Below the pieces are notes generated by a model. The model had not been told where the DNA came from. It saw only the letters and a program-made list of their open reading frames with translations, and did not search any database. Shown here one piece after another: positions 22,789-50,998 of a stretch of 64,000 bases of DNA. Source of the DNA: Schmidtea polychroa (taxonomy: Eukaryota); contig CM097886.1 of assembly GCA_044892525.1 (NCBI GenBank), forward strand, positions 99,076,001-99,140,000, written 5' to 3'. Made by a program: the position numbers and the translations under genes. Position 1 is the first letter of the stretch, and each line of letters begins with the position of its first letter.

Positions 22789-23742
22789 TTATATCAAGAT
22801 TTCAACATTGGGGGAGTCTGTAGGAACAGTTTCATATATGTTAATATCATGTAATTCCTTTGGAAGTTTAATAGAATTATTTTGAGGAGTCTTCCAGTCG
22901 ATTTCATCAGCAAACCAGGGATGAGTTTTAAGAGTTTGCTCCTTCCCCATGATACAACCTAGGCGTTTCGTGGGATCAACTGCCAGAAGTCTCTTAACTA
23001 AATCCCGAAGCTCATCAGAGAAATGAGGAGGAAATTGAAATTTGCCGGAAATTATTTTTTTCACTAGGTTCAGTTGAAATTCCATTTTGAATGGTGAATA
23101 GCCGGCACCTAATTCATATAGTAGAACGCCGAAAGCCCACCAATCCACAGCTAAACCATGACCTTGATTAAGGAGAATTTCTGGTGCCATGTATTCCAAT
23201 GTTCCTTGGCACGTGTAGGATCGACCTGTAATTCTTTTGGAAAAACTAAAATCTGTCAACTTTATCATCCAACTGGAACTTATCATTGTATTTTCCGGTT
23301 TCAAATCTCTATAAGCTATTTCTTTCGAATGAAGATATTCCAAACCTAGGAGTATCTGAAAACTGAAAAATCTGACTGATGATTCTCCTAAATAAATATT
23401 TTTCTTGAGCACATTAAAAACTGTCGTCGGGAGGTATTCGAGTAGAATATTGAATGTGCAATTCGACTCAAATGAACCGTAGTACTTGATCAGAAATTCG
23501 TTTGATATCGAGGAAAGAATTTCGACTTCATAGCTTACCTTTGATGCTAGATTCAATTCATCGAATTGGGTCTTTGATATTTCTTTAATGGCCACAAAGT
23601 CTGGAGCATCATCTGGTTTGTTATTCATCCATTCAGCCATGAATACCTTTGAGAATGCTCCTTCACCTATTTCTTTAATTATATAGAAATCTGTGAGACT
23701 CAAATCGTTTGATAATTCTTGTTGATCATCTTCAGACGTCAT
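22789..23742 (-). CDS. Intronless, divergent AGC-group (PKA catalytic subunit-like) Ser/Thr kinase
   Basis: GEGAFSKV, VAIK, alphaC Glu (YEVEIL), YRDLKPEN, DFS in place of DFG, YTCQGTLEYMAPE, GHGLAVDWWAFGVLLYE and HPWF. First ATG at 23742. Confidence 0.9.
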   Translation of the reverse strand: MTSEDDQQELSNDLSLTDFYIIKEIGEGAFSKVFMAEWMNNKPDDAPDFVAIKEISKTQFDELNLASKVSYEVEILSSISNEFLIKYYGSFESNCTFNILLEYLPTTVFNVLKKNIYLGESSVRFFSFQILLGLEYLHSKEIAYRDLKPENTMISSSWMIKLTDFSFSKRITGRSYTCQGTLEYMAPEILLNQGHGLAVDWWAFGVLLYELGAGYSPFKMEFQLNLVKKIISGKFQFPPHFSDELRDLVKRLLAVDPTKRLGCIMGKEQTLKTHPWFADEIDWKTPQNNSIKLPKELHDINIYETVPTDSPNVEILI

Positions 23743-24312
23743 CAAAACCCTTCAAATAATAATTCCAATACAAAATTAATTGATTGAACAAAGTTCAAAA
23801 TGATAAAGATTAGACCCATAAATCCAGCACAATTGATTAAGCATAGAAATCAATAAATCACTGATTATAATCAATAATTATGAGGAATTGATTATTTAAA
23901 TTATATTTTAACCAAATTTATTCCTACAATTGCCTCACTGATACTGTATCCCTTGAAGCTGATAAAGTCCATTGTAGTTTAGGTCTAACCTCTTAAACAT
24001 AGAATGACATAGTTGGCTACGGTGGATTAGGTCTATCCCGAGTGGTCTACGATAACATTGGTCAATGTCACATTTACCAGATTTGTGAGATTTTAGAAGG
24101 ATATCATTATGTGAACATTATTTCTGATGAAAAGATTTATTAATATATTTGACCATTCTTTTTGAAGCCACTACTTAATTTATCAATAACATTTCATGTA
24201 ATTGACAGTTTATTTTGACAATTTATCTTGATGGCAATATGTTTGTGTGTATATATGATCGTAACATTTTGATGATAATTGTGATTATTATACCATTTAT
24301 TATAGGTATATT

Positions 24313-24390: not shown

Positions 24391-24773
24391 AGTGCATTTT
24401 ATATCGCAATAAATGTGAGGAAAACATAGATTGAATCGGGTTTATTAAAATAAAGAATAAATTGAATAAAGGTTACATTATTTATTATTAAAATAATTTA
24501 TTTAAATTTCTTTTTATCAATTATATTAGAATTATTTTTTTTAAAAAGTTATAATAGTTACATTAAATTTTAAAATATTTATTATTAATATTCACTTGAA
24601 AAATGCAGTGCCGAAAATTCGTGAGTATCAACAAACATCGATATATTACTGATTTAGAGTCATCAAGCTCTCTTTTCAATAAATTCAACTGAAAAAATAA
24701 TCAGTGGTGAAATTGGAAGAAATAAAAGTTTTTATAATAATATTAATAATAAATTAATAATTTTTTTTAATTT

Positions 24774-25766
24774 TGTTGAGGTTTGAAAATAAATTATTAA
24801 ATTATATAGTTCAGATTAAAAGGAAAGCCGAAATTGAATGGCGGTCAAGCGGAGAAGCAATGGCAAAGAAAGATATGATAAAAACAGAACTATAAAAGGG
24901 TACAATCAGACATGAAATGGGAAAATGCGCAAACCGGAGGAAGTGGAATAAAGTGAAAAGTTATCGAAATTGAAGCTGGAAAACGGGAGAGGGGTAGATT
25001 AAGGGATGGTGAAGAAGACAGTGAGTAAGAAATTGTTAGAAAATGTGTGGAAAGGGTAGTAAAACAGACAAATGTGGAAAAACGTAAAATATTAATTAAT
25101 TAATTAATTGGCTAATGGGAAACCCGAGCTAATGGGAAGCCCGAGCCAATGGAGAACCCGAGCGATGAAGAAAACCCGAGCACGGCAATTTGGAAGGGTA
25201 AACAAACGAGGAATTCAGAGGGCAATTATCCAAACAACCGGATAAACGAGGGTAACAAAAGACGGGGAATTACGAAGAGGGTCAACAAAAATAGTCAATT
25301 AGGGAATGATAGCGGAAGAAGTCAAAACCAATTAGGTCACAAACGGGCCAATTACAACGATTATGGGAGTATATAAGGAAACTCAAAATTCACATAATCG
25401 GCGATAGCCTTAGGTAGGGATACGAAGAAACAGACGATAGGAGTTCGAGGAATAAAATAAAAGGAAAAAGGAATTATAAGAGGAATTTAGGAGTCAGAAA
25501 GGAATATTAAAAGAGTTCGGATCAGAGAGCGGAATCAAACAAAAGGTGAAACCTATTTTTTTTTAAATCGTACAAGGCCGAGACCTTCCAGAGCGGAGTT
25601 CGAGCTGAAATTGTGTAAGAATTGTGATTAACCAACAGTGTGATTAATTGTTGAGAGTTGTGAATTGTTATAAAACAAATATACGTTGGGAGTTTGTGTT
25701 TATTGATTTTGGAACACGTGGAGTCAGAGTAACCAACGGTTGATTTTGGTATCATAAAACCCAACA
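24774..25766 (+). repeat. 5' LTR (993 bp)
   Basis: TG...CA termini. Four ~17-bp tandem AATGG(G)AAACCCGAGC-like repeats near 25116-25182, a TATA-like GTATATAAG near 25369 and AATAAA near 25452. Duplicated at 33036. Confidence 0.95.
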
Positions 25767-25773
25767 TATATTT

Positions 25774-25791
25774 TGGTGAGCCCGACGTGAT
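25774..25791 (+). promoter_or_regulatory. Primer-binding site complementary to the tRNA-Trp 3' end
   Basis: TGGTGAGCCCGACGTGAT differs at one base from the complement of the conserved eukaryotic tRNA-Trp 3' end (ATCACGTCGGGGTCACCA). It lies 7 nt after the LTR. Confidence 0.85.
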
Positions 25792-25952
25792 TAAACGTTG
25801 GTGGGCGAATATTGAAGGGTGAAAGAGGTGAAGAAAATTAAAGTAATAAGAAAATTGAAAATAATTGGAAATTGGAAGAGGTAGTAATTATTGATTATTA
25901 ATTTTAATATTTAGCCGTGAGTGAATACAATTTGAAGAACCGAAAAGTAAAG

Positions 25953-28043
25953 ATGGCCAGAGAGAACGCTGAGATGATAGATTTTGCCAGTTGTCAAAAA
26001 TTACCGGTGAATCAGTATGGAGGAGACCCGGTTGATTTTGCCGATTTCATGGGCGATTATTATATGTACGCTTCGGCCTATGGGTGGTCACAAGCCATAA
26101 TGGTAGAAAGATTCCCACTCTATTTAAAAGGAGCCGCAAGAGAAGCTTGGCAGCAAGTGGATAAAAAGACAATTGGAAATGATTGGGCCAAACTCAAGGA
26201 TGCGATGGCAATGAAATTGGTGGGAGGCGACATAAAAAGAATAATGCGCCAAAAATTTTATGCCAGAGTACAAAATCCAAATGAATCGGTAAGTGAATTT
26301 GCATACAATTTAACGACTTTAGCAGACAAGGCCTTCGAAGCAAAACCTGAACAAGTGGAGATGGTGAAACAAGTCAAAGAATTGCTAGAAGATCAATTTA
26401 TAACTGGAGCCCATCCTCAAATAAAAAAAGCACTATGCTACGTGGATTTTTCGAATTTCGATGAACTCGTGAAGAAAGCAATGAAAATTGAATTGAATTT
26501 AAAAAGTACCAGAAAATCTGAAGTATTTGCCGCAAATATTGAGAAAGAAGAAAGGTCGATAACTCCAGTAAAGAATCAATGGGAATCAAACGAACCAATC
26601 CAACCAAACAGGTCTCCAAGATTAGGTAATAAATTGGAAGTTAATAAAGCAACTTTTAGCAATCAAATAAACGAGATATCGAATAATATTGTATGCGAGT
26701 TTTGCAAGAAGCCTGGACATTATTCAAATCAATGTTGGTTCAGAAATGGTAGAAATAGGAGTCCTAAAGGAAAAAGTACTGAAAATAAGCCAAACAATGG
26801 TGACATTGAATGTTATCGATGTGGAAAAATGGGCCACATTAGCAGAAATTGTTTTTCAAGAACTATATCACCTTCTAGATATCCCAAGAAATCAAGTAAA
26901 TTTCAAGGTGAATCAATCAATGCCAATGTAGCTTATGCTCAAAAAGACGACTTTAAAGAAAAGATGGAAAATGAAGTTCGAGAAATGAGAAAAAAATTAG
27001 ACAAGTTGATGTCGAAAATTGAATTTGATGATGAAGCAGACTCTTATATGGCGTACGAAAATATTTCGGAAAACTTTGCTAATAAAGTAAAAAATGACTT
27101 GTTGAACGAAAAGGCTACGTTGTTATTAAATAAAATGGAAAGATGGCTCGAAAATATGGAAACAAACAATCCAAGATTGAAAGAGTGGGTTACAGAGTTA
27201 AGTCAGATCCAACTTAGTCATAAGAAATTGAAAAGTGCATTGAACTTATGTTCTAAGCTTTACAGCATACTCCAAGATGAGGAAATTGCTAAATTAATGA
27301 GAACATTTGGAAAAGCATTAAGATCCAAAAACGATTTGGATAATATTATCGTGGAGACCACAGACATCAATGGTATTAAAGCTCAATTTTCTATCAATCC
27401 TTATGGACAAATCAAAGATTTGACAATGCTTATTCTGGCTAAATACAATAAAGGCAGCGTGAAATTGACACAACGGCAAATGGGACAACTGAGGGATGAG
27501 GAATACTTGGTAGATTGTGGTTTAATCCCTGGATTAAAAAATGAGGTAAATATTTTGGATACTTTTAATCATTCAAATTCAGATTTTAAAAATTGGAACG
27601 AAACTTTAGGGAATTTGCGAGAAATGTTATATATCGGAGATGAGGACGAGATCAATAAATGTCTTGAATTAGTGATGAGTTCAAAAATGAATGGAAAAGA
27701 TAAAGAGAAGTTGTTCGAATGTATTTTGCCGCATATTCATAAAGAAACGAAATATCAAACCAGATTAAAGGAAACTCTACGGAAATTAAAATATGATTAC
27801 AGAGAACCGGAGTGTAATAAGAAATCATTAATGATAGCTCAAAATATTGATGGAAAAGTTGAATACTTTCAAGAGCACTGGAGTGTAAAGGTGTCAAAAT
27901 TACGACAAAAAGCTGCAGAAACAATGGGAAATAATGGAATTATTAACGAAAATCTAGTTAATTACGGATTTAATCCAAATGACATAAATAATGTTTATGC
28001 AACGAAGTCAAAGGATGCATGTCTGAAAACGAGGTTATTGTAA
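25953..28043 (+). CDS. Gag-like polyprotein: capsid region, two CCHC zinc knuckles, long C-terminal extension with a probable ubiquitin-like domain
   Basis: FADFMGDYYMYASAYGWS...FPLYLKGAAREAW is typical of gypsy gag. Knuckles CEFCKKPGHYSNQC (26694-26735) and CYRCGKMGHISRNC (26811-26852). UBL-like segment at 27342-27554. Confidence 0.88.
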   Translation: MARENAEMIDFASCQKLPVNQYGGDPVDFADFMGDYYMYASAYGWSQAIMVERFPLYLKGAAREAWQQVDKKTIGNDWAKLKDAMAMKLVGGDIKRIMRQKFYARVQNPNESVSEFAYNLTTLADKAFEAKPEQVEMVKQVKELLEDQFITGAHPQIKKALCYVDFSNFDELVKKAMKIELNLKSTRKSEVFAANIEKEERSITPVKNQWESNEPIQPNRSPRLGNKLEVNKATFSNQINEISNNIVCEFCKKPGHYSNQCWFRNGRNRSPKGKSTENKPNNGDIECYRCGKMGHISRNCFSRTISPSRYPKKSSKFQGESINANVAYAQKDDFKEKMENEVREMRKKLDKLMSKIEFDDEADSYMAYENISENFANKVKNDLLNEKATLLLNKMERWLENMETNNPRLKEWVTELSQIQLSHKKLKSALNLCSKLYSILQDEEIAKLMRTFGKALRSKNDLDNIIVETTDINGIKAQFSINPYGQIKDLTMLILAKYNKGSVKLTQRQMGQLRDEEYLVDCGLIPGLKNEVNILDTFNHSNSDFKNWNETLGNLREMLYIGDEDEINKCLELVMSSKMNGKDKEKLFECILPHIHKETKYQTRLKETLRKLKYDYREPECNKKSLMIAQNIDGKVEYFQEHWSVKVSKLRQKAAETMGNNGIINENLVNYGFNPNDINNVYATKSKDACLKTRLL

Positions 28044-28882
28044 CTCACTGGCCTAGAATCGTAAAAGAGGAAGATGATGAGATTGGAGCAATTAAAACTG
28101 AATTATCTGAGGAGCTAAATGAAGCTGAGTTGAAAGGTTTTGAGTCAAAAAACAAAATTTTACATGAAGTGCGAAATGGAAATGTAACTGATGTCAATGA
28201 AACTGATGCAGCAAGTCAAGAAATTTATAATATGAATGACAAGCCGATAAAAACGGAAGAATTAAAATGCGAATTGAAGTTTGTTGAAATTGGTAATACT
28301 GATAAATCAAATAACCGTAAGCGGAAAAAGTGTGAGTTAACAGAAAAAGACGATTTAAGCGATGTAAAAACAGATTTAAATGATTTTATTGAAACAAAAG
28401 TGATTTTAAAAAGGTTGGTAATGGAAATATATGCACTAAATGAAGAGAATGTATATGAAAATGAATTTATGCAACAACTTGCGAAACAGCTGAAAAGGAG
28501 ATTTCCAATCATACTTCAACATAGCGTTAAAAGAAATGTATTTTGTGATGAAACAGTAATCAAGAAGGTAATTAATAAGGGTTTGAACAGAGATGTAGTA
28601 TTGACGGTTCTAGCTTGTATTGTCTTGGAAATTGGCACACATGGTTGTTTGGAATCGGAAAAATTGGAAAAGTGGATCGAAAAAGCCACAAAAGTGGCAA
28701 ATACATATGTGACAAACTGGATAAAATATAATGGTGGATGGAAAAATTTGGTACTAAAACCGAGGAATTCAAAAAGGGTGTATGAGTTAAAAAAAGGCAA
28801 AAATGATATATACATGGTTGACGATGTTTGTTTTTGTAATTTTAGGAATCATCAACAATACAACGTTATTGGTAGTATATGA
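28019..28882 (+). CDS. LTR-element ORF2: acidic N-terminus plus a Bcl-2-like domain
   Basis: BH2-like YVTNWIKYNGGWKNL, degenerate BH1-like VINKGLNRDVVLTVLAC and BH3-like FMQQLAKQLKRRF, in Bcl-2 order and spacing. Confidence 0.62.
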   Translation: MSENEVIVTHWPRIVKEEDDEIGAIKTELSEELNEAELKGFESKNKILHEVRNGNVTDVNETDAASQEIYNMNDKPIKTEELKCELKFVEIGNTDKSNNRKRKKCELTEKDDLSDVKTDLNDFIETKVILKRLVMEIYALNEENVYENEFMQQLAKQLKRRFPIILQHSVKRNVFCDETVIKKVINKGLNRDVVLTVLACIVLEIGTHGCLESEKLEKWIEKATKVANTYVTNWIKYNGGWKNLVLKPRNSKRVYELKKGKNDIYMVDDVCFCNFRNHQQYNVIGSI

Positions 28883-29852
28883 TTATTCTCAAATTAAAAA
28901 GAAAATTCCTAGAAATGTAAAAATTTATAAAAAATATAAAATTGTGAGTACTGATCTGAAAGACAACGAGAGGAAAAATTTCAAAGATTGGGAAAATGAA
29001 ACAAAAAAGGACACGAAACTTCAACAAATATTTACCAAAAATAAAACTTTAAACAGCTATAGTAATAAAGTGTTAATTACAACAAAACAAATAGAGAATA
29101 ATAACTTACGAGAGCCATTCACACCGAATTATGACAAAAATACTTACGTGGCACGAGAGCTAAAGGCAAATTTTAAGCCCCCTTGGAAGAATGAGCAAAA
29201 TGAGACATACACTCCTGGAAAATTCAACAATCAAATTATAGTTAAAGTAAAAACAAATGAATTATATAACAATGAGAAAGTAATAGAAAATAAATGGTCA
29301 TTGTTTAAAGTTGACAGCCAGGTAAACCATTGGAAAAACGAGTCAAATCGAGTAGTTTTTACAGTTCAAAATAAATTAGCGATAGCATATCAAAATTCGG
29401 AAATCGACAAAAGAAGCATTATCAGTAGTGGACAAAAAATTATCGTTTTGTTGGATGCCGGTAAAAGCTATTTTTCATTTATTACTCCTAATTTAGAATA
29501 TAATTACCTGATAAAAATTAAATACCAACAACGGATATTCGAGCCATATCGATGGCAAACAGTTTTAGAGAAAACAAGAATAGTGCCAAAGCCGAAACCC
29601 GACATAACCACCACACGTCCAATTTCTACAAGTCAATATCAATGTAACAATCGTGTAATAAATAAACGGACTCAAATTGAGATTCGTCCAACTTTAATCA
29701 TCTGTGAATGTTTGATATACCTCATACTGACAGCATTCCTCATACTATCGCTTAGGTTAAGAGTAATAACAATCATTTTGTGTGGAAATAGACAGCATAC
29801 TATAGATGACTTACGACTTGAATCTTTCAATGTGATCAAAACCACTGTATAA
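28803..29852 (+). CDS. LTR-element ORF3: predicted membrane protein of unknown function
   Basis: 349-codon ORF with hydrophobic segments at both ends (YTWLTMFVFVILGII; LIICECLIYLILTAFLILSL) and a beta-strand-like central region. Confidence 0.6.
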   Translation: MIYTWLTMFVFVILGIINNTTLLVVYDYSQIKKKIPRNVKIYKKYKIVSTDLKDNERKNFKDWENETKKDTKLQQIFTKNKTLNSYSNKVLITTKQIENNNLREPFTPNYDKNTYVARELKANFKPPWKNEQNETYTPGKFNNQIIVKVKTNELYNNEKVIENKWSLFKVDSQVNHWKNESNRVVFTVQNKLAIAYQNSEIDKRSIISSGQKIIVLLDAGKSYFSFITPNLEYNYLIKIKYQQRIFEPYRWQTVLEKTRIVPKPKPDITTTRPISTSQYQCNNRVINKRTQIEIRPTLIICECLIYLILTAFLILSLRLRVITIILCGNRQHTIDDLRLESFNVIKTTV

Positions 29853-30012
29853 AAACTATTATAAAATTACATGCGTGTAAACAAATTTTATAAAATTAGC
29901 ATGGTTATATGAATGTAGATGTGTTACTTTGTTTGGTCGGACTTCGCTATGGTATGCTTGGCCTTGCGCGATAAAGAGTGTTTAAAAAAACTTTAATTAT
30001 ATTTAACTTCAG

Positions 30013-30258
30013 GAAGCCCAAGAGGAAGAGTCAATCAAAGAGTGTCGAAACTCAATGAAAGAAATGAGAAGAAAAATGAAAGCAATGGAGAGGAAAATTG
30101 ACGACTTGGAACTAGAGGATATGATTTGCAAAAGAAAGCTGGAAAGGATGGAAATTCTCCTGTTCCAATACGAAGCGGAAGTCGTGTTGCTAAGAATGCA
30201 GATACAGGGAAATGAATGCCCGACCGATGAGGAAGGAGAGATGGATGAGTTAGAATAA
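30013..30258 (+). CDS. LTR-element ORF4: acidic coiled-coil peptide, probably a spliced exon
   Basis: Acceptor-like TTTAACTTCAG ends at 30012. It is followed in frame by EAQEEESIKECRNSMKEMRRKMKAMERKIDDLELED, which has a heptad pattern. Confidence 0.5.
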   Translation, partial: EAQEEESIKECRNSMKEMRRKMKAMERKIDDLELEDMICKRKLERMEILLFQYEAEVVLLRMQIQGNECPTDEEGEMDELE

Positions 30259-31329
30259 TTTAATGATTAATAAAATTTACAATTTAAACCTCACTTTTCG
30301 TCCTCGAAGTAGTAAAAGAGAAGGGCTAAACGATAATAACATTTACATTAATAAAACGAAATTTTAAAAGGGAATAAATGAATAGAACAAAATAGTCAAT
30401 AAACAAAATTTATTGATAAGTTAGTCCTCTAGCAGGACAAAACTCTCGATGTGGGAGTCGTCCACTACACCCCGAGGAGGTCTTTTTTCGAACCTTTTGA
30501 ACCTGTGGGACAAGTCCACACAGGCAAAAGTACGTTTTAGACCCGAGCGAGGTGGCGCGGGTACAGGAAACCTAAGTAAATCCTACAGTAATTTTAATCA
30601 AATAGAAACGAAACTAACCACATGAGGGGATCATATTTTACTAATGAGTCCTAAATTAAAGAATAAAATTAAATCAAGCAAAAAAAAAAAAAAATTAATT
30701 CCGACATAAAACAAAAGTAAAGTGACAAACAGCATAAGTGAAAAGGCTAAAGCTGTGAGGAAAATTTATATTTATAAATAACTGGCAAATAAAAACCAAC
30801 ATAAAATCTGTCGCTGTACTCATCATCGACCGTCGATATCCGGAGAAATGTTACCATAGCAAACACGCTCTATAATTAATAATGCATAATTGATAGCTTT
30901 CAATCATTAAGATACACTCAACATTTAGATAGGAAGCTAGTTATATTGGAAAATCGAATTCCTATTACAAGGAAGATGAAAGAGAAATATTTAATAATGA
31001 AATGGAAAAATATTTTTTTAATATTTTTTTTGAATAATTATTAGAATGTAATTTTTCACATAAATAATTTTAAAAGTTTAATAATATTTTTTAATATTTT
31101 TTTTGAATAATTATTAGAATGTAATTTTCACATAAATAATTTTAAAAGTTTAATAATTTTCTATTAACTGTCTTAAAATTGCTCATTTGAAATCCAAACG
31201 ATATTGGGCATGAATACATATTGCGGTAACGACACAAGCTACTCCAAGAAAAAGCATAATAATAAAATAATAAAATGTAAAATAATAATTTGTAGTTACA
31301 TTTAACAAAAAAAAAATTTTTTTTTCCAT

Positions 31330-31830
31330 TACAGCAAGTCACAAACTTGATACAGAACTTCTGTTTCCATTCTTCAGCTGTTTTCTGCTGTAATCGACCA
31401 TAACTATCTTCAAGTCAACGAGCTCTTGAAACTTGTAGTTCAAGTTCTTTTTCATTGGAAATGGATATCAAATTTTTGGGTATGATTTCGTAAAACCCTT
31501 CGAGAAAACTATGAAGTTGTTGGTGAATAGCTCCAATCATTTTCTCTTGACGAACTGATTTAACATATTCAGATTTATTTTCCTCTGTGAGAAGTACTAG
31601 AGAGTTTCTGTCGGTCCAAATTCTGATATTTGAATAGAAAACGTTTGATAGAGAGGCATTGCCAAAACATCCTTTTCTATAGGAATTCCAAATCAGGGAA
31701 AAACTGATAGTATTCTTTTTCTAGATCAGTATATCAAATAGAGATGCCGAGTATATGTTTGTAGAATGCACGAATCATCATCCGGAATTATAGTGCGCTT
31801 GTAACGATCTGTAGAGAAATATTGTCGATT
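31330..31830 (-). pseudogene. HUWE1: Decayed HECT E3 ligase fragment (HUWE1-like) carried antisense inside the LTR element
   Basis: Minus-strand translation gives RAFYKHILGISI*YTDLE, then after frameshifts [21 protein letters not shown], then [57 protein letters not shown] (31597-31427). These are collinear with the HUWE1 HECT N-lobe. Confidence 0.85.
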
Positions 31831-33022
31831 GCCTAACATGTTCAATAAAATTTTGTGCGTTGATTAGAATTAGCGAGAAGAAATGTTCCGTCTTTGGAAT
31901 TTGTTGTTATAATAATCTGTGATGATATATTGAATTTAATATCAAAATGATGATAAAACATTTTTAAAATTATTCGATCTTTTAATCTAAAATGTATTAA
32001 CCCTTTCCTCTCCTCATTATTTTCTGCGCCCTGCATATTTCAATACCAATTTACATACACAGGATAGAAAAGGATTAACGATATATTTTCAATTATGAAT
32101 TTAAACAAATTAATTAAAAAATTTCAAGAAACATATGATCCTCTACTGTGACATTAATTACTCTAAATTCATCAAATTTTTATGACTTCTATATCTTTTA
32201 AAAAAAAAAGAAAAAAAATCAACGAAAATTCAAATACGAACACACCTAACTGAAAATAAATAAATAAAATTCAAATAGCAAATCATCCTTGCCCTTTAAC
32301 GTAGTTGATGAAAATAACAAATAATGTCGATGGAGTTTTGTTGTGATGGAATAAATAAAATTCAATTAGCAAATTGCCAGACAAATCCGAATGAGATTTT
32401 GGGTATTAGTACAGTTTATATATGATATTTCTCTGCCAGCAGTAATTGCACAGCACTTCAGCACCAGCCGATCAGAATTGATAAGTCGTGCAGACACGCC
32501 TATATCGTAGATTGTTTGGTATATTTGTGTATTTGGGTTAATGTGAGTTTGGAATCACTATTTGTGCAACCACTACACAAATCAATGTTTATCATATTGG
32601 TTCCGGTGGACGGTTGGAGTGGGTCGTTTGAAAATTAGCTCCTATCTCGGAACAAACAAACTGTGATAAATTTTAACCTCCTTTAACTCGATTCGAATGT
32701 TGATCGATGGAATATTTTAAATTGAACTGCAATGATAAAACTGATATATGGTTAATCTAAATCATTAAACATTATGCATGTTAAATTAAAGACGAATTTT
32801 AATAAAATTAATAATAGTCTAATAAAGTCTAATAAAATTAATAATAGTCTCAAAATTTTAAATATCTATCAATTAAAAAAAAATAATCTCAAAATTTTAA
32901 TATTCTAAATATTTTATGACTCTCCAATCAAATGAAATTAAAATAATAATAATAATAATATATGTGAATTTTAACTGAAATTACATTCTCGAATAAGCAT
33001 ATTTCGAGGACGAAATTTTTTT

Positions 33023-33033
33023 AAGGGGGGAGA
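33023..33033 (+). promoter_or_regulatory. Polypurine tract
   Basis: AAGGGGGGAGA, 2 nt before the 3' LTR. Confidence 0.85.
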
Positions 33034-33035
33034 TA

Positions 33036-34028
33036 TGTTGAGGTTTGAAAATAAATTATTAAATTATATAGTTCAGATTAAAAGGAAAGCCGAAATTGAA
33101 TGGCGGTCAAGCGGAGAAGCAATGGCAAAGAAAGATATGATAAAAACAGAACTATAAAAGGGTACAATCAGACATGAAATGGGAAAATGCGCAAACCGGA
33201 GGAAGTGGAATAAAGTGAAAAGTTATCGAAATTGAAGCTGGAAAACGGGAGAGGGGTAGATTAAGGGATGGTGAAGAAGACAGTGAGTAAGAAATTGTTA
33301 GAAAATGTGTGGAAAGGGTAGTAAAACAGACAAATGTGGAAAAACGTAAAATATTAATTAATTAATTAATTGGCTAATGGGAAACCCGAGCTAATGGGAA
33401 GCCCGAGCCAATGGAGAACCCGAGCGATGAAGAAAACCCGAGCACGGCAATTTGGAAGGGTAAACAAACGAGGAATTCAGAGGGCAATTATCCAAACAAC
33501 CGGATAAACGAGGGTAACAAAAGACGGGGAATTACGAAGAGGGTCAACAAAAATAGTCAATTAGGGAATGATAGCGGAAGAAGTCAAAACCAATTAGGTC
33601 ACAAACGGGCCAATTACAACGATTATGGGAGTATATAAGGAAACTCAAAATTCACATAATCGGCGATAGCCTTAGGTAGGGATACGAAGAAACAGACGAT
33701 AGGAGTTCGAGGAATAAAATAAAAGGAAAAAGGAATTATAAGAGGAATTTAGGAGTCAGAAAGGAATATTAAAAGAGTTCGGATCAGAGAGCGGAATCAA
33801 ACAAAAGGTGAAACCTATTTTTTTTTAAATCGTACAAGGCCGAGACCTTCCAGAGCGGAGTTCGAGCTGAAATTGTGTAAGAATTGTGATTAACCAACAG
33901 TGTGATTAATTGTTGAGAGTTGTGAATTGTTATAAAACAAATATACGTTGGGAGTTTGTGTTTATTGATTTTGGAACACGTGGAGTCAGAGTAACCAACG
34001 GTTGATTTTGGTATCATAAAACCCAACA
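33036..34028 (+). repeat. 3' LTR (993 bp)
   Basis: Same length as the 5' LTR with no differences noticed; the internal ORFs 25149-25376 and 33411-33638 translate identically. Followed by the ATTT TSD. Confidence 0.95.
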
Positions 34029-34153
34029 ATTTTGTTAAATAATTTATAACAAAAACACAAAAGTCCTCAAATAAAGCGCTAACACATTTTAGTGTCAATA
34101 AAAATATTTTTTAAGAGCTTAAGAAAAAATGTCAATTAAAATTGACATATTAA

Positions 34154-36014: not shown

Positions 36015-38734
36015 CAGGGCCGTACCTGGGTATATGGCCGCCTGCGTGCTAGTATGCATGGCCGCCCTTTGAGATAACATCAAAATCAAAGAAAAAAATC
36101 AAATTTTCATTCTTAATGTTTATTATTATACTTATATATCTAATGTACATGTACATATTACCATTGAATATAAAACATTAATATGTTTTGGCACATATAT
36201 AAATCTATGATATTACAATCAAAAATTTACTCTACGTGATTTTTTAGAGGCAAATTCTTCAATTGCCCCTTCAATATTTAAGGAATCAGCAATTTCACTT
36301 TCAATTGCAATAATTGATATATTACTGAGACGTTCTTGAGTCATTGAAGTTCTCAGGTGGTTTTTGATTATTTTTAATTTTGAAAAACTTCACTCTCCAG
36401 ATGCAACAGATACTGGAACTGTCAGTAAAAGTTTTAAACTTCTGGCGACATTTGGAAAAGAAGTCTCCAAGTTGTATTTGTATAAAAACTTTATGAGTTC
36501 TTCGGGCTGCTTTCTGTTTTTTATGATAATTTTTAGAGAAATTAACTCTTGATATAATTCTACGCCACTGATATCGCAAGATTCATCATCTTTAAATTTA
36601 TTATGAAGATCAAAACAACTTTTTTTTTATTTCCTCATGTTCCATATCGATAAATTTGTATAGAAATCCAAAACATTGTTCGAAATTTGACAAAGTTTCA
36701 AAACGGGTGGTAAGAGATGAAATAGCTGAATCTAGTATTACATAGAAAAAATTAATTTGAAAATGTTCTTCTGGAGTAAATTGAATATCTTCATCTCCTT
36801 CATAGCTAAATTGTTTTCGGTGATGTCGGCGACGTACACTAATTTCAGCAGGAAAATCCGGTTCTGTTTCAAGTGCTTTACAAAGTTCATTAGAAATCTG
36901 CAAATAATTTTCGAAACTTTAGTTATTTCTAATGCTTTTGAAAAATTTCTAAAATTCCTTAATTGATTCAGCACACGAACTGATATTCCAAGAAACTTTC
37001 TGCATCATTTTGCTAATAAAATCTACCTTTTCAAAGATTTCGTACCATATTATTATTGAAGAAATAAATTTATAAGATTTAAGTTTCATTGCAAAACATT
37101 CAGCTTCATGTTGAACTGTTGGCATTGAAGATTCCTCAGCTATTTCTATAAGGCTGTCATAAATTTCACTTAATTCATTTCGCAGTGGTCTAATCGCTTT
37201 AATTCTTGCTTCCCATCGAGTTTCACTAACTTGTTTCAATGTTAAAGATTTTACATTTTTCTTTAAAACTTGCCATCTAAATGGTGATTCACTGAAAAAG
37301 TTGTATATTGCAGATACATTACTGAAAAAATCCACCGTTGAAAACGAAACTTTAGCTGCATCATTAATGGCCAAATTTAATGTATGCGCGTTGTATGGCA
37401 TAAACAGAACTCGTGGATAATTGTCCAAAATTCGTTTTTCCAATCATTTATGTTTTCGGGACATATTAGACCCATCATCGTATCCCTGGCCCCTCATATC
37501 GTTAATATTTAAATCAAGATAGTTTAACTTTTGAATTAAGAAGTCGTAAAAAGATTCCCCAGTACATTTTTCAGCTTGATAAAAGCCAATGAAATTTTCT
37601 CTTACTTCAACTTCATAATTTTTAATATGTGCATACCTAATAATCATTGTAATTTGCTCGACATGTCCAGTGTCCGACGTACAGTCCAAAATGACTGAAA
37701 AATATTTTATTGATGTTAATATATATTTTTGAATTTGGGTTGCAAGGATAGTGATTATTTCATTTTGAAAGCGATTTCCCAGGTAATGTGGCATGTGGTT
37801 CTTTAAAGCGATTGGTTCTTGTACGCGTTTTATGTGGTCTGCCATTATATCATCAAATTTTCCTATCATTTCAATTGCTTTCAGAAAATTTCCATTATTT
37901 TTTTCGTACAATTTGCTGGAAGAACCTTTAAAAGCTAAACACTGTCCTGCTAGAAATTGTACCACAGATATCATGCACCTGACAATTTGACACCATCGTT
38001 TTTTCTCGGCGTCATAATACCGTTGCATATTCTTATCAATTGTAGTTTTTCTTTTTAAATTTAATTCCAATTTTTTCCAACGGGTGCAATTTTCGATGTG
38101 CAGCGATGTTTTTTCGTGACGAGATAAGTTGTCAGATATGTGTTGCCAATCGTTGAAGCCTTCATTAACTAATTTTATTTCTTGTTTGCCAAATAATTTA
38201 CAACAGAAGCAAAATGTGGCATCATTTTTTGGAGAATAGATTAACCACTCACGATTAAATTTTTCACCATTTGGCAGTTTTCTATAGAAATAAACCTTTG
38301 AAAATGATCTTCCAAATTCATTTAGTGGATATGTAGATTGTATATTTTGAATAGGGCCTTTTTCAATTAAAATATCCAGCATTTTATTGGTAAGTGTTAA
38401 AGGCCAGCAAGCTGGATCATTTAGTTCTATACACAGCAAAATATTCTAAATCAATTTCAGTGATATCGTCGATATTTGTAACTGCAATATCTCCTATTTC
38501 ATCATTACTATTAATATTATCATTATCATTTGTATTTTCGTCAGATAATTCATTTTCATTGGAAAAAAATTCACTGCTTAGATTTGCTTGGCTACTGCAA
38601 GCATTTTGCATTTCTGGAGGTTTTTCCAAATATTTGGTTAGTGAACCAAAGATTTTTTTAGCAACATGTTGTTTTTCTTCTCGCTTTCTTTTATATTGTG
38701 CTCCAGACAATCTTTTCGTTTTTCTCCCAGTCAT
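36015..38734 (-). mobile_element. Inactivated hAT transposon (ZMYM1-like / DUF4371 transposase with hATC dimerisation domain)
   Basis: Starts MTGRKTKRLSGAQYKRK at 38734. Motifs WLIYSPKNDATFCFCCKLF, FSVILDCTSDTGHVEQ, RGQGYDDGSNM, SETRWEAR and FPNVARSLKLLLTVPVSVASGE*SFSKLKIIKN, ending at 36219. Frameshifts near 38430 and 36960, stops at 37444 and in hATC, and CxxH changed to YxxH. TIR-like CAGGGCCGTAC at 36015. Confidence 0.9.
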
Positions 38735-41035: not shown

Positions 41036-44000
41036 ATGAAAATATTTCTGTTGATAATCTTAACTATTTGTAAGTATGTTAAGATATATAGATATATATT
41101 GATATGACTTTAGATGCTACACATTCGAAGAGGTTAAGAAAATCCGTTTCTAATAATAAAAATCAAAATCTATTTCGTTTAATTGATAATTCTAAAGGGA
41201 TAACATTGCCGAAATTTGTAATTTTGCCGAACTTTAAAAACCACAATGAATCTTTTGAAATCCAGTACAAATCTTTCAGGAAAAGCACGACGATTATATC
41301 CTCGTCTTCCAAGTGGATTTTATCCGTTTATATTGACCAGCATTTCTTCTATAACAATCAATCGAATGAGCCTCTACATGCCCTTTGTTTCTTGGAATTT
41401 TCCATTGAAAATATCAGCAATGAAGTCGGCCAAAATGCCAGCTGTAAAGTCATCGTTCGGGTGGATAATTTCACTGCCAGTGCAAATTGTTCTTTGAAAA
41501 TAGGAAGACCACCAAGCACCTGCAGTGTACATTTTGAGTTGGGAGAAACAATGCTTTCGAATTCCCCAAAGAGCTGGGCGTCAGTTTCAGGAGAATTAAC
41601 GTTGCCTTCATCGCCATCCATTACAAGCTCCATCAATCGGCCGGCATTTCTAATCAATAGCTTGAAACCGGTCAATTGGACAGTTATCCAATCGGATGAG
41701 AAATTCGGGAAATTTGGTCTCGGTCTACCGATCTCATCTGTCAGAACTGGATCGAGATTCAAAATACCGTTTTCAATTACGAAAATTGATCGACTGAATT
41801 CCGCAAAAATCCTGGTGGAATATAATGATTGTTTCTCGTTCAATGGCCTGGAGAATGTCAACAGTTCCCGTTGGGAAATTGAGAATGCTTTCTATCAGAT
41901 GGACAAAAGACAAACTGGATTTATTCGAGTGACTTCGTTGGATAAGACTTATCGAGTTGGCGAGGAGTTGTACAAAGAGAGGTGAGACATAATTTGCCCG
42001 AATCATAAGGAAAACTGAGACAATCCCACTTCATTCCCCCCAGGCCTCATCGGGTTAGATTACTCAACGATTCGACACACACTCTCACACACATACACGC
42101 CCGTATTTCAATGGCAGCTGGAGTAAAATTTAATTTGCATTTGTTCGACACATGCACACCAACACACACACAAGAATACACACAGCAACATTACGCTAAC
42201 ACAAACAGTAACATGAGGTGAACGTGATTTAATTCAACAAAACAATTGCTTTTTCCTTAAATAAACATTTTCAATCTCATTTGTATACATAACAATAACA
42301 AATCTCGATGTAATTGTAATTCTCGATTCCTATTGGCTGATAATTCGATTGGTCCGTTAACGCATCAATGTGACGTGATGCAATTTCCAGTAGAGAGACA
42401 GATTTCTTTTTCTCCCGGAGGCCCCACTTAACATGTCGATCTTAATTCTTTTTCTTTCATTTTTCATTTGTTCAATGAGATTTTTCAAATATCTATTTTA
42501 TGATTGATTTAATGATTTTATTACAATAATTATTATTAATTATTATTAATTATTTATAATGATATTTTATATTGGATAAATGCATTTAATCCTGACCTTG
42601 CCATAATTTGGTTAGGGTGCTTAATTGGCTGTCATTGTCAGTAACTCATTGATATATATGGAACATTAATTTGATTCGTTAACAATTCCACAAACGGATA
42701 AATCATAGTGCGTTGAATATTGTTGCCGGAGAGCATTTCGTAACCTGGTTCCTGGTTATCCAAACTAGCGCACCAACAGCATAGCAATAATAACAACAAC
42801 AACAATAAATATTGACAGTGCTTGTCTGACCAGAGAGAGAGAGAAAGAACAATCTATTGAATGTTGATCGGAACAGTTTGTTACAGTAAATGAGTCAACC
42901 AATCATAGAAGGATATGATTGTTTATTTTACTGTGTTATAGCGGGGACAATATCACCAGCAGTCATGGCCATTGATTGGTGGCCGTCCATAACTCTCTGA
43001 TTCATATCAATAAATAGGAAATGAGTTCTCCAATGAAATTGTCATTTCCATGCGTCTAATCCTATTAATTAATAATGAGACAAATAAATGTTTACCTAGT
43101 TGATTTTGTTTACTTTTAAACATTCACCGGTATAAAAGATGCAAAGAAATCATGGAAAAATTCAGTGAAAATGCGAATTGTCTATTTCAAATATATTTTG
43201 TAAGATATTGTTTGGTAACTGAGTTTCTATTAATTGAAGGCCAGCGAGAAAGCACTTGAGAAGAAGTGCAAAATCAATAAATCAAATAGCACAACAATAT
43301 TATTCAGATATATCAATAATGATTTGGTTGGAAATTCGATTCTGGCCAAATAAGCAATGTAACAATAGGATGGTGCAGTGGGGAATTATTCCCTGCAATT
43401 AGTGCCCATTCAGTTGAAGCTTGAATTGGGGAATTTAGTGTCAATGTGGATCAACTATCTAAATGATGTCGGCTTCCAGCACTGTCAACGGGACAGCGGT
43501 TCAAAGTCAATATTGAAGTCAGCTGCAAATCAACATTTGATACAGGAGGTCGAAAGAAAAAAAACTTACATATCATTACTTCTCGACATCAATCGAATAT
43601 TTAGGACGGCGTTTTGTTTAGCCATGTGAAATTGCATCGTGATTAGTGTTGTTTCAATTGCCCTTATACACTGTTTACATTAATCTGTCTGGTTTCATCG
43701 GGCTGACTCTCGGCATTTTACTGATAGGGAACTACTAGTGACACTTTAGGCACCTTTATTTAGTTTTTACAATGATTACGGTCTCCCCTCTCTTCTCTCT
43801 CTCTCTCTTAACAATCTTCAATACTCCATATTTACCTTGTTGGTCATGCAGCTAGACCAATCAAATTGATCCATTAAATCATCTTAGTATACATTTCAAC
43901 AACAGATATAGAATAACACCGGATTTTAGAGTGATCATGATGATGAAGTCCAGGAGCATATAAATGCTTTGATGGTTTGAATTATCGGATTAGTTGATGT

Positions 44001-47127: not shown

Positions 47128-50100
47128 GAATGAGAATGAGAATGAATAAAATGGGAATTAAACTTGACATTTGTGATTGCCCTAAAATCTGTCACTGTTA
47201 AATATTAATTAATAATCAAATTCTTAGCAATATAAAATTATTTCTAACATTTATTGCATCCTCTCCAAATAAATAATCTATTTGTCTGCAAATAAATGTT
47301 ATTCAAATAATAAAAATCTCGTCTACTAATGATTGGAATTACTCCCCCTCCCTGCGCCCTCCTATATAAATATTATTTGATCCAGTTCATAGGTAGGTAT
47401 AAATGGCGTTCAATATGTGACGACATGCTTTTAATCAATAGAAAATTCAAATCCATAAAATCAATAAGATTAGTGCTAATCAATTTCAGCACTGTTGTCA
47501 TTGACAACGCACAGTTCCAGCACATAGAGATATAAAGATATAGATAGTATAGAGATACTATAATTGCTTAAACATTGAAATGATATACTTGATCTCTTAT
47601 CAATATTTCTTTCTCTAATATAATGTTCTCATTGCCTCGATGAAATGCTTATTGTTGCACCTGTGTAATTCACCGCCATCTCAATATATCCTCCAATGCT
47701 TCCCAGTGGCAATAACTAACTAAATAGCAACTAAATCATCCGTGAAAATTGAAATAGATAATTTGGTGAAATTTATGGCTGATTTACTACAACTAGTGGA
47801 TTTTATTGTTTCCAGTTAATGGCTGTCGGCTAGGGTACTGGATGCGAGGGATGTGATGGATGTGAGAGGGAGGGGGGGGGGGGGGGTCATACGGATATTT
47901 ATATCTATAGGACACCTATCAAGTGCAATGCCATTGGCATATCTTAATTGCTGCGGTAATAATATTCCGCATGCTAGCGATATGTATAGGTTGTATAATT
48001 GCCATTTCAATGTCACATTGCCTTGTATATATTGTATACATGTATATAATGCCAATGGTTTGAGAATCAACAGGTCGCATAGTTGGTCATTATCAGTTAT
48101 AAATTATGAGATATTTACATGTAGTTGGCTAGCTCATAGCTGAATTGGTTATGATCAACTTTACTCAGATATCTCTAATGCTGCCACCGGATATGCTATG
48201 CACAATAGCATGATATCAGATAGCCCCCCTTCATCTTGCACCAATAATATATCAACCATTAATAGAATGGAAATCATTTCATAAAGATCGCCATTTGATG
48301 TTGTATTATTAAAGTGACATAATCTCATATATACGATGTCAAAGGATAAAGCTGAAAGGATCGAGAAACATGAAAAAGAGAAAGAATATATGAAAGTATG
48401 ACAGAATATTTGTGAGAGGACCCATTCTATAGGGGGGGGGGGGGATATTCTGAGGCATTGGCCAATGACTACTTGAGACCCATATAAGGTCGATTATTAT
48501 GGTAGATTGAATGCATAATAACCATTGATCATTGCATCCTTGACAAAATTTACAGTTTTTTCCTTTCTTGGTTGCATGATCCGCTGACAGAATAATGAAT
48601 GGAAAGTATGAATTTAATATTTTCCCTTTCCCATGTTATTTTCGCTCAAAATTTTCATTCACTGATTGCAGTCAAGCAGACCTCTTGGATATGAGTTTCA
48701 CTTCAATGGCATTTTTATTGTTTTTACCTTTCGTTGATTTAGCTCTCAATTGTGTTGCGGATTTGTTGTTAATTGTCCCTTCTTTCTATTCATTATTATT
48801 ATTATTATTGATTATTATTATCATNNNNNNNNNNNNNNNNNNNNNNNNNNNNNNNNNNNNNNNNNNNNNNNNNNNNNNNNNNNNNNNNNNNNNNNNNNNN
48901 NNNNNNNNNNNNNNNNNNNNNNNNNNNNNNNNNNNNNNNNNNNNNNNNNNNNNNNNNNNNNNNNNNNNNNNNNNNNNNNNNNNNNNNNNNNNNNNNNNNN
49001 NNNNNNNNNNNNNNNNNNNNNNNNNNNNNNNNNNNNNNNNNNNNNNNNNNNNNNNNNNNNNNNNNNNNNNNNNNNNNNNNNNNNNNNNNNNNNNNNNNNN
49101 NNNNNNNNNNNNNNNNNNNNNNNNNNNTGATAGAGAAATGATATGAAATGTAAAGATGAGCCTGCCCCTGAGAATGGATATNNNNNNNNNNNNNNNNNNN
49201 NNNNNNNNNNNNNNNNNNNNNNNNNNNNNNNNNNNNNNNNNNNNNNNNNNNNNNNNNNNNNNNNNNNNNNNNNNNNNNNNNNNNNNNNNNNNNNNNNNNN
49301 NNNNNNNNNNNNNNNNNNNNNNNNNNNNNNNNNNNNNNNNNNNNNNNATTCCGTCCACCATATCAAGTATCAAGTGTAGAAATGAAACTCATTTGAAATC
49401 ATGTGAAAAATTTGGCTATTGAAATCAACGTAATTAAAAAATAATTAACTCGATTAAAATCTAATTAAAACAAATGGAGTAAAATGAATGCATTAATTAA
49501 AGGATGGAATCATATGATTAATGGGAGAGATGTAAAAGAGACAATATTCCCTATCTCTCTCTTGAATATGATTGTTTCATATAATTATTATATATATATG
49601 ATATTATTCATTCATTATGATTCTAGGTTCAGCCGGTTGAATTCATTTGGCATTAGGACATACTTGGCAGCAACGATGGAGGACAGAAAGCCATGGATTG
49701 ATGTGAGTAAGGAAACTGATATATCCTCACTCATAACTAGTAAGCCATCAGATGTAGTCAGTTTCTCCAGAAACAATAAAGGCTCCATCCTAGTTGATGT
49801 GAAATCCAATCAACGGACTGTAATCAGTCTGGTTGACAAGAGGAACAAATTGCTAGCTGATACTGAAATATCAGTATTCAGTGAACATTGGGCATCGGTT
49901 ATAAGATTCTTTGGCCGTTGCCTTTCTCAAGTTGATATAGAGAAATATGAAGCTCATCCAAATGGGGAAGCGCAGTTCCATAATTACAAGCTGAAAGCGA
50001 GAAAGTTAGAATTGGGAGAAAAGTGCCGGTTATATCTAGGAGTAGTGTTCAATGATAATTCGGAAATGGTTCTAGAGGACATGGCAGCAGAGGATTATCG

Positions 50101-50998
50101 GGTTGAGGTGAATGGTATAGAATTTAGGAATGGTGATCTTGTACATTTCCAGCTAGAAATGAATATTGGATTATATGGTTCAGTGGAATGTGGTACATCA
50201 AGCATTGTGAGGATGGGTATCATTGATCTGAGCCATGATTGGATAAGACGCAATGAAGCGCATATCAATATTTCTAACACACCTCAAGCAATGATAACAA
50301 CAGAAAGAATGATTGAAAGTGAAACAAATGGAAAGCCCTCTGAATCATTCCTTGAACCGCGAAACTCCTTATCCATTGCCATTTATTGTATAGTTGGTAT
50401 TGTTGCCATGGCAATGGTGATATTATTATTAAATTGCTTAATTGGATTAAACATTCGGAGAAATTCAACAACTCATATGCAAAGGAGACTCAGTAAATCA
50501 GGAAATTTTGATAGGCAAAGTCATATGAAAGCTGATCATGCTCATCATGCTCAGAAAGCATTACAAGAACATTATCCTCCATTGTTACCTCCTCCTGGAC
50601 CAATTGTACCTCCTAGTAAACCCATAGTTGATTGGGCAGTCTCATCAGAATCTGGCATAGGATTAGAACGTTCTTCACTTGGCTCTCAGCAAGACCAGCT
50701 TGGCTTATCCACCTTCCGAATATCTATGGCAAATGGGTCAATGCATCCATCTGACTCATCATCTTATATCCATCGTACCTCTCCATTCAATGAGATAATC
50801 ATTGAGTCAAATCCTCCAATGTATAATGTTGAATCTGCTCCACAACAGATTGAGTTACAAACCTCCAGCAACCGATCATTCTGGCCTAGAATTAATTCAC
50901 CTTATCGAATGTCTAATCTCGACAATTGCCAAGATTTCAGGAGCACTCATGACAGCACTCTCTCATCAGAAAGCAAAAAGAAATTAGACATTGTGTGA
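41036..50998 (+). CDS. TMEM132: TMEM132-family type I membrane protein, multi-exon, interrupted by gaps
   Basis: Signal-peptide exon 41036-41069 (MKIFLLIILTI), exon 41114-41981, partial exon ~45278-45482, an exon ending at 46747 (KISLSDNELNPISGWKV...CVVLYQSAVLKI, resembling TMEM132 IEVSDTELSQIKGWRV...YQHA). A phase-2 splice joins it to the last exon 49627-50998, which has the TM segment LSIAIYCIVGIVAMAMVILLLNC. Some internal exons are unresolved. Confidence 0.78.
46868..47016. repeat. Long palindrome (63-bp arms, 23-nt spacer) flanked by (ATT)n tracts
   Basis: TTATTAAAAAGAGAGCTTGCAGAC...GATACTCACG pairs with CGTGAGTATC...GTCTGCAAGCTCTCTTTTTAATAA. A related single arm occurs at ~24605-24730. 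Confidence 0.85.
47069..47126. repeat. (ATT)n microsatellite
   Basis: About 19 consecutive ATT units. Confidence 0.95.

Follow-up and report, generated by a model that had tools for sequence, protein, structure and literature searches.

We analysed a 64,000-nucleotide stretch of the Schmidtea polychroa genome (GenBank assembly GCA_044892525.1, contig CM097886.1, forward-strand positions 99,076,001 to 99,140,000), hereafter the window, which has a GC content of ~30% and contains 11 runs of N and many transposon remnants. At 24774-34028 of the window lies a 9,255-bp long terminal repeat (LTR) element that has kept a gag gene and lacks pol. The original prediction, made from the letters of the sequence, had described it as a young LTR element loaded with apoptosis- and ubiquitin-related cargo. 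The element and its immediate ends are made up of the following features, in window coordinates.

24770-24773, no strand: 5' target-site duplication (TSD), ATTT, from a comparison of the outer ends
24774-25766, plus strand: 5' LTR, 993 bp, TGTTG...CAACA, purine-rich on the plus strand, from its identity with the 3' LTR
25774-25791, plus strand: primer-binding site (PBS), an 18-mer starting with TGG, from its uniqueness and its sharing with relatives
25953-28043, plus strand: open reading frame 1 (ORF1), Gag, 696 amino acids (aa) from the first ATG in a frame of 708 codons, open, from Pfam and relatives
about 26112-26342, plus strand: capsid domain in ORF1 (Pfam Retrotrans_gag, 8.5e-9)
about 26694-26855, plus strand: two CCHC knuckles in ORF1 (Pfam zf-CCHC, 4e-9)
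27324-27566, plus strand: ubiquitin-like (Ubl, beta-grasp) domain in ORF1, from an alignment with the Ubl of the relative P0001 and a profile run against the PDB
28019-28882, plus strand: ORF2, 287 aa, open, an acidic linker followed by a Bcl-2-like module, in a frame different from that of ORF1 and ORF3
about 28469-28741, plus strand: Pfam Bcl-2 stretch of ORF2
28803-29852, plus strand: ORF3, 349 aa, open, an envelope (env) remnant, from a BLASTP match to an env signal peptide
28815-28892, plus strand: env-homologous residues 5-30 of ORF3, from BLASTP against the relative L001
about 29682-29789, plus strand: C-terminal transmembrane helix of ORF3, from hydrophobicity
29853-30800, plus strand: purine-rich non-coding stretch with the strand skew of the element, from composition
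30007-30255, plus strand: short 'coiled-coil' frame (ORF from its ATG, 30055-30258), within the 29853-30800 stretch
30800-32900, no strand, bounds approximate: low-GC stretch of ~2.1 kb without strand skew, from the composition profile
31427-31618, minus strand: HUWE1-type HECT fragment, exon-sized, ~64 codons, antisense, from Pfam HECT and HUWE1 in the PDB
33023-33035, plus strand: polypurine tract (PPT) adjoining the 3' LTR, a purine run
33036-34028, plus strand: 3' LTR, 993 bp, from its identity with the 5' LTR
34029-34032, no strand: 3' TSD, ATTT, from a comparison of the outer ends

The ends of the element are intact. The alignment of the two LTRs gave an identity of 993/993, and the similarity stops exactly at both outer ends without running into the flanks. 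The same four nucleotides, ATTT, adjoin the element on both sides; a random 4-mer match in such AT-rich flanks has a probability of ~0.013. The PBS starts 7 nt past the 5' LTR, and its 18-mer is unique in the window and had no match in 100 shuffles. Direct TG..CA LTRs, a PBS, a PPT and a TSD in the 4-6 bp class together make up the feature set of a Ty3/gypsy element. The young age, the apparently identical 993-bp LTRs and the PBS, PPT and TSD that had been read from the sequence are thus confirmed; the match of the PBS to tRNA-Trp, also proposed there, is putative. No second copy of the element was found in the window (1 copy seen), an Rfam scan of the whole window matched no family, and no tRNA gene was found in the window or in the relatives described below. 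When the complement of the PBS was scanned against IMG/VR, it gave 59 matches, one of which overlapped a tRNA gene (internally, in a tRNA-Met).

ORF1, ORF2 and ORF3 are overlapping plus-strand frames that cover 25953-29852. At the local base composition, the chances of their staying open are 8e-29, 4e-12 and 1e-14, respectively; therefore, the three frames are coding now or were coding very recently. ORF1 has no stop or frameshift. Beyond the capsid domain and the knuckles, it continues into a coiled-coil stretch, the Ubl and a shortened second Ubl-like tail, in which there is one short internal deletion relative to P0001. Searches of large protein collections found four relatives of ORF1 (P0001-P0004). 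The identity to P0001-P0003 is 32-38% over up to 95% of the length of ORF1, P0001 being 32% identical over that 95% and carrying Pfam matches to ubiquitin (2.7e-8) and Rad60-SLD in its C-terminal half. The Ubl of ORF1 aligns with this ubiquitin match and with segments in the relatives L002, L004 and L007, and a profile of the five Ubl sequences matched ubiquitin, ISG15 and FAT10 in the PDB, with single-domain chains at about 2e-5. The proposal of a Gag with a ubiquitin-like domain is therefore well founded.

The fourth relative, P0004 (metaclust, 458 aa), is the closest Gag sequence found in any search. It consists of EF-hand domains joined to a C-terminal stretch that shares 67% identity with residues 1-120 of ORF1. 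Either the gene model is chimeric, or a host gene of a related species has become fused to part of a Gag.

The relatives place the element in a lineage of large, pol-bearing retroelements. On L001, the contig of P0001, the Gag frame is followed by a 1,661-aa frame that contains a Monjiviricetes-type fusion glycoprotein (7.5e-87), protease (PR), reverse transcriptase (RT), RNase H (RH) and integrase (IN). A search with the env region led to P0005 on L004 and P0006 on L005, and an env alignment (A2) run against the JGI metagenomes led to L006 and L007; the same alignment gave no match in IMG/VR, and a Gag alignment (A1) gave none in either IMG/VR or the JGI metagenomes. In P0005, Gag and CCHC precede a weak Pfam Bcl-2 match (1172-1233), after which come env (from 1293), protease and ankyrin repeats; on L004, a PR-RT-RH-IN frame follows. 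In L007, one frame of 3,700 aa runs from Gag through Ubl (residues 845-900) and env to integrase. Ankyrin repeats are also present in L005. The PR-RT-RNase H-IN order is seen in L001, L004, L006 and L007, and it classifies the lineage, not this copy.

The PBS is shared within the same group. The whole 18-mer is identical in L004 (954-971), and the core formed by its first 13 nt is found in L002 (124-136) and L003 (873-885), in all three cases upstream of gag. The PBS has thus been kept in relatives with a Gag that is just 25-38% identical to ORF1; the use of one primer tRNA would evidently be a stable trait of the lineage, and the PBS should be usable as a search key.

The order of modules in these relatives has a published counterpart. 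Burro/GYPSM1 are giant gypsy-like LTR elements of planarians (Jurka 2007; Grohme et al. 2018) that were described by Arkhipova and Yushenova 2019 (PMC6431247) as having Gag, 2-3 CCHC knuckles, a Ubi2/SUMO-like domain, a BCL2-like domain, an in-frame mononegavirus-like env and PR-dUTPase-RT-RH-IN. Their internal region reaches up to 25 kb and includes MATH/TRAF, BIR, ankyrin and dUTPase motifs (PMC6431247). The metagenomic relatives show this whole order, once in a single frame, and the element in the window has Gag, CCHC, Ubl, the BCL2-like module and the env signal peptide in the published order. We also observed 89%-identical repeats on L004 (412-507 and 17552-17647) that lie 17.1 kb apart, as would be expected if a giant element had LTRs that have since diverged. 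On L005 (2457-5336), units of 41-47 bp form long tandem arrays upstream of gag; tandem repeats are marked in the legend of the Burro figure (PMC6431247).

ORF2 corresponds to the module that precedes env in part of this lineage. Over residues ~116-255, it can be aligned with the stretch that immediately precedes the env signal peptide of L004, L006 and L007, and the GGWK motif is common to all of them. In the four elements, whose Gag proteins are about 25% identical, the W-K is invariant and the preceding GG is near-invariant. In a leave-one-out search, a profile built from the modules of L004, L006 and L007 ranked ORF2 first among 307 six-frame pieces of the window with an E-value of 1.9e-8, while the next-best piece reached 0.069. 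A pairwise phmmer comparison of ORF2 with P0005 gave 7e-5 at the very residues that bear the Pfam Bcl-2 match of P0005. From these alignments, we take ORF2 to be homologous to the pre-env module of the pol-bearing relatives.

The likeness of ORF2 to the Bcl-2 family, which the original prediction had also noticed, is weak but consistent across methods. The Pfam Bcl-2 profile is matched over positions 1-100 of 100 (E-value 0.011 with the whole ORF as query, 0.0022 with just the domain). When ORF2 alone was compared with the PDB, the second-best match was the BH2 region of the schistosome Bcl-2 protein 3qbr, a weak likeness (E = 1.5). A profile that includes ORF2 (A4) gave a best PDB E-value of 0.0039, and all 60 listed of its 97 matches were Bcl-2 or Bcl-xL; a pre-env profile made from the relatives only gave a best value of 0.018, again with Bcl-2 or Bcl-xL for every match listed. 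Both profiles aligned these anti-apoptotic chains over the region from BH1 to BH2. ORF2 shares a BH2-like W...GGW with its relatives and has a hydrophobic central helix (a 19-mer) at residues 192-212. It contains no stop or frameshift, and no match to it was found among 5.8 billion proteins (word search) or 1.84 billion representatives (phmmer). Look-ups of the exact sequences of ORF1, ORF2, ORF3 and four neighbouring ORFs likewise returned no record. The family likeness thus appears remote but reproducible. Viral Bcl-2 homologues are anti-apoptotic proteins of herpesvirus, poxvirus and adenovirus, and a virus-like mobile element that encodes a diverged Bcl-2-family module would be analogous to them; by this analogy, ORF2 would delay cell death. 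Compared with recognised members of the family, however, the likeness of ORF2 is far weaker, and ORF2 has neither the NWGR of BH1 nor a C-terminal membrane anchor.

ORF3 starts as an env protein and then departs from it. Residues 5-30 match the env signal peptide and the first mature residues of L001 (BLASTP, 54% over 26 aa, E = 4e-5), the N-terminus is hydrophobic, and the protein has a C-terminal transmembrane helix and 6 N-glycosylation sequons. A membrane-protein ORF had been expected here, and we can now add that its head is the env signal peptide of the lineage. Beyond residue ~30, ORF3 shows no similarity to the env of any relative, and it has no match in Pfam (Monjiviricetes_fusion included) or in the PDB. 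What is left of env is the first ~26 homologous residues, i.e. one large loss or replacement, and yet the frame stays open for 320 codons past the last env homology, for which the chance is about 1e-14. A single-sequence AlphaFold2 model of ORF3 had a mean confidence (pLDDT) of 41, with only the two terminal helices predicted confidently. ORF1 and ORF3 are in the same frame and ORF2 is in another, which amounts to two frame changes relative to the single-frame L007. Unlike in Burro/GYPSM1, the env portion is not in frame with the preceding ORF2; the relatives do show a mononegavirus-type env between gag and pol.

Downstream of ORF3, the enzymes are missing. Protease, RT, RNase H and integrase were absent both by Pfam on the ORFs of the element and by tblastn with the pol of five relatives, while the same pol query detected an unrelated gypsy fragment at 58.7-59.6 kb of the window as a positive control. 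With 15 proteins of the relatives as queries, no residual env or pol was found in any frame of the interior. The loss of pol in this copy, with all four enzymes, amounts in effect to a single deletion. Because it has no pol enzymes, the element as sequenced is incapable of autonomous transposition. Both the absence of the four enzymes and the picture of a non-autonomous element with its own capsid, gag open and pol gone, agree with what had been proposed.

The region in place of pol, 29853-33035 (3.2 kb), contains no frame above about 100 codons and no significant duplicate of gag sequence. Its first part, 29853-30800, shows no similarity to the env or pol of the relatives, and the coiled-coil ORF that had been listed there is a short frame of 67-83 codons with no significant family match. 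Strong purine richness marks the plus strand from the 5' LTR up to ~30.8 kb, and it returns in the 3' LTR. In the intervening segment, ~30.8-32.9 kb, both skews are close to zero and the GC content is lower, as in the DNA outside the element, and this segment is presumed to be captured host genomic DNA. A 73-bp unit is tandemly duplicated (97% match) at 31009-31157, inside the host-like segment.

The same segment contains the antisense HUWE1-type HECT remnant that had been predicted. Pfam HECT matched 31418-31720 on the minus strand with an E-value of 7e-11, covering profile positions 132-187 of 306 in the N-lobe, and the best PDB matches were HUWE1 (1.2e-16), aligned without gaps over ~64 residues to positions 4192-4252 of 4374. 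On the minus strand, the fragment is preceded by AG and followed by GT. The C-lobe with the catalytic cysteine is absent from the fragment, and because this lobe is lacking, the fragment is not a gene for a ubiquitin ligase. No other HECT piece was found inside the element or in ten minus-strand frames of the outer flanks; a second piece considered at 31340-31414 on the minus strand was dropped, as neither phmmer nor Pfam supported it. Since the flanking frames show no HECT match, the possibility that this is a native HUWE1 locus was ruled out. We regard the HUWE1 piece as host DNA that was probably captured incidentally.

The abrupt change of composition near 30.8 kb raises the question of whether reads of different repeat copies were collapsed or mis-joined, for instance by joining the 5' half of one element to host DNA beside a solo LTR. 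LTRs that are 100% identical in a repeat-rich assembly, with 11 runs of N in the window, would fit such an artefact. Nonetheless, the ATTT duplications match at the outer ends of the LTRs, the PPT lies exactly at the 3' LTR, no run of N falls within or beside the element, and the flanks lack the HECT exons that a native HUWE1 locus would show. We therefore regard an assembly artefact as extremely unlikely.

From the combination of intact ends, open 5' frames, missing enzymes and lineage-specific modules, we consider the element to be, probably, a non-autonomous copy that integrated very recently and that derives, by deletion, from a Burro-type Ty3/gypsy lineage resembling endogenous retroviruses. 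The Ubl and Bcl-2-like modules would have been inherited from this lineage and have survived a deletion, and not have been newly captured, because they occupy the same order and position in the pol-bearing relatives and in the published Burro/GYPSM1. The idea that apoptosis- and ubiquitin-related cargo was loaded into this element is consequently not upheld: the Gag-CCHC-Ubl-Bcl-2-like-env order already exists in those relatives.

A plausible course of events would be as follows. The derivative would have kept the LTRs, the PBS, the PPT and the 5' third of the coding region (Gag-Ubl, Bcl-2-like module and env signal peptide), while the env body and pol would have been lost, with ~3.2 kb of non-coding DNA in their place. 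In the simplest case, a parent copy would have lain antisense in a HUWE1 intron, and the host piece would have been acquired there as unspliced genomic sequence through read-through or template switching, after which the PPT and the 3' LTR would have been regained by recombination. Because identical LTRs arise from reverse transcription, the deleted RNA was probably itself copied and integrated by the RT and integrase of an autonomous relative that shares its primer and acts in trans. The element's own Gag possibly packages its RNA. For Burro, the apoptosis- and ubiquitin-related domains have been suggested to interfere with host apoptosis and ubiquitination (PMC6431247); the Bcl-2-like and Ubl modules of this element, if expressed, could act on host cell death and ubiquitin pathways in the same manner. 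The original prediction had suggested, as an example, that such genes might keep host cells alive during mobilisation.

Several points weigh against this interpretation, and the first concerns the timing of the deletion, which may have followed integration. In that case, a full-length element would have inserted, the env body and pol would have been deleted in the chromosome, and the gap would have been filled with HUWE1-bearing DNA, leaving a one-off defective provirus and no non-autonomous family. The single copy in 64 kb, the lack of any match to ORF2 in the searched protein collections and the 3' 3.2 kb without long ORFs are all compatible with this scenario. The identical LTRs are as well, in that they leave little time for decay, and for this reason the open frames alone show no selection. 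However, the scenario requires two rare events, a large deletion and the insertion of filler, before a single LTR substitution in 1,986 bp. Moreover, the PBS, the PPT and the whole of gag were kept exactly, as a transmissible derivative requires, and the 320 open codons of ORF3 past the env homology (P about 1e-14) are not expected of random filler. A one-off provirus thus seems unlikely to us, and a derivative that was already deleted when it integrated is the reading we prefer.

The other points concern the link to the lineage and the identity of the modules. The gap of 7 nt between the LTR and the PBS is rather long. The link to Burro is one of architecture, drawn from the published description and from metagenomic relatives of unassigned hosts. 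ORF2 scores 16.7-18.9 bits against Pfam PF00452, below the gathering score of 31.4, and the PDB E-values for the Bcl-2-like module are just 0.004-0.02. The NWGR of BH1 is not kept in ORF2, although the BH1 position aligns, and the single-sequence AlphaFold2 model of ORF2, all-helical over residues 114-238, has a pLDDT of 35. Finally, the Bcl-2-like module was undetectable in L001-L003, the closest Gag relatives, and also in L005. As L004, L006 and L007 do have it, the module would be patchily distributed or exchanged within the lineage.

These features leave some room for the view that the accessory modules are inert, with the Ubl and the Bcl-2-like module being diverged structural or linker parts or decaying relics, and ORF3 a non-functional frame. 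A remote, sub-threshold likeness with an unconserved BH1 motif and no membrane anchor is what such a view would lead one to expect. It would likewise fit that the closest Gag relatives have no detectable Bcl-2-like module and that ORF3 has neither a homologue nor a confident fold. On the other hand, the module was kept, with its invariant W-K and near-invariant GG, in four elements whose Gag has diverged to ~25% identity, and all the listed PDB matches are anti-apoptotic Bcl-2 or Bcl-xL chains in BH1-BH2 register. The published annotation of Burro, which was made independently, also lists BCL2-like, BIR and Ubl motifs (PMC6431247). Inert modules are therefore possible but, in our judgement, doubtful.

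The element differs from Burro/GYPSM1 in several respects. It is 9.3 kb long as against more than 30 kb, and it lacks PR, dUTPase, RT, RH, IN and the env body. Pfam found no MATH/TRAF, BIR, ankyrin or dUTPase in its ORFs, its coding region consists of three overlapping ORFs and not one polyprotein, and it includes host-like DNA in which a HUWE1 exon lies antisense. With LTRs, PBS, PPT and gag and without pol, it is similar to the TR-GAG elements of plants, which are defined by these same properties (PMC13570524), and, like TR-GAG, LARD and TRIM elements, it would presumably depend on an autonomous partner. While the plant elements keep gag alone, the element described here comes from an AT-rich, animal-like genome and has two further long ORFs, one Bcl-2-like and one for an env-derived membrane protein. 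Having all the cis requirements and no enzymes, it would be functionally comparable to the TR-GAG class plus two ORFs. The position of the host fragment, between the coding region and the PPT and 3' LTR, resembles gene-fragment capture by LTR elements, and its antisense orientation and intron-like flanks fit the capture of unspliced flanking sequence. It differs from such captures in being a single exon-sized piece with no coding potential in the sense of the element.

A more far-reaching possibility is that the element belongs to a propagating 'satellite' family of Burro-type endogenous retroviruses, which would have shed env and pol while being selected to retain a capsid, a Bcl-2-like survival factor and a small membrane protein, and whose transcript, with its antisense HUWE1 exon, would feed the small-RNA machinery of the host against HUWE1. 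HUWE1 is an E3 ligase that promotes the turnover of a Bcl-2-family survival protein; therefore, the Bcl-2-like ORF and antisense HUWE1 would push the cell in the same direction. We find this very unlikely and offer it as speculation.

Burro-type elements make up a large share of planarian genomes. The earlier advice to compare the element with Burro before claiming novelty proved correct, since the Burro architecture settles that question: the headline of an apoptosis- and ubiquitin-related cargo is not new because the domain set and its order have already been described for Burro. Our literature search found no compact pol-less derivative with Gag-Ubl, a separate Bcl-2-like ORF, an env-headed ORF, identical LTRs and an antisense host exon. 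The existence of a compact 9-kb derivative whose LTRs are identical would point to very recent activity of the lineage, or of a partner serving it in trans, and would offer a natural 'minimal' version of these elements. Those of its modules (Gag-Ubl, Bcl-2-like, ORF3) that are kept under purifying selection across copies would be the ones that matter apart from the enzymes. For annotation, four independent sequences of the Bcl-2-like module are now available, together with a PBS that is conserved in the lineage. If the element is a single dead copy, it would be an ordinary defective provirus of little wider interest.

The remainder of the window contains other transposon-derived and host sequences. 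The unrelated gypsy-like fragment at 58715-61351 on the minus strand consists of a gag with CCHC (60239-61351), an aspartyl protease (59136-60161) and an RT piece (58715-59164) that is 37% identical to the RT of L001. We considered it as a helper and rejected it, as it is truncated and has no LTR in common with the element. It is adjoined by an ORF with DUF5641 (BEL/Pao-type) at 57112-57921 on the plus strand. About 1 kb upstream of the 5' LTR, at 22789-23745 on the minus strand, there is a single-exon protein-kinase ORF of 318 codons (Pfam Pkinase, 1e-57), the exact sequence of which is absent from the protein collection. Two ORFs on the plus strand, at 41104-41985 (293 aa) and 49484-50998 (504 aa), match no significant Pfam family. 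A pair of ORFs at 36949-38439 on the minus strand contains DUF4371 and a C17orf113-type zinc finger, and probably represents a gene, or the remnant of one, that derives from a DNA transposon. An alpha-galactosidase A ORF at 57-1109 on the plus strand (Melibiase_2, 2e-91) starts at profile position 33 and probably represents one exon of a host gene whose beginning precedes the window.

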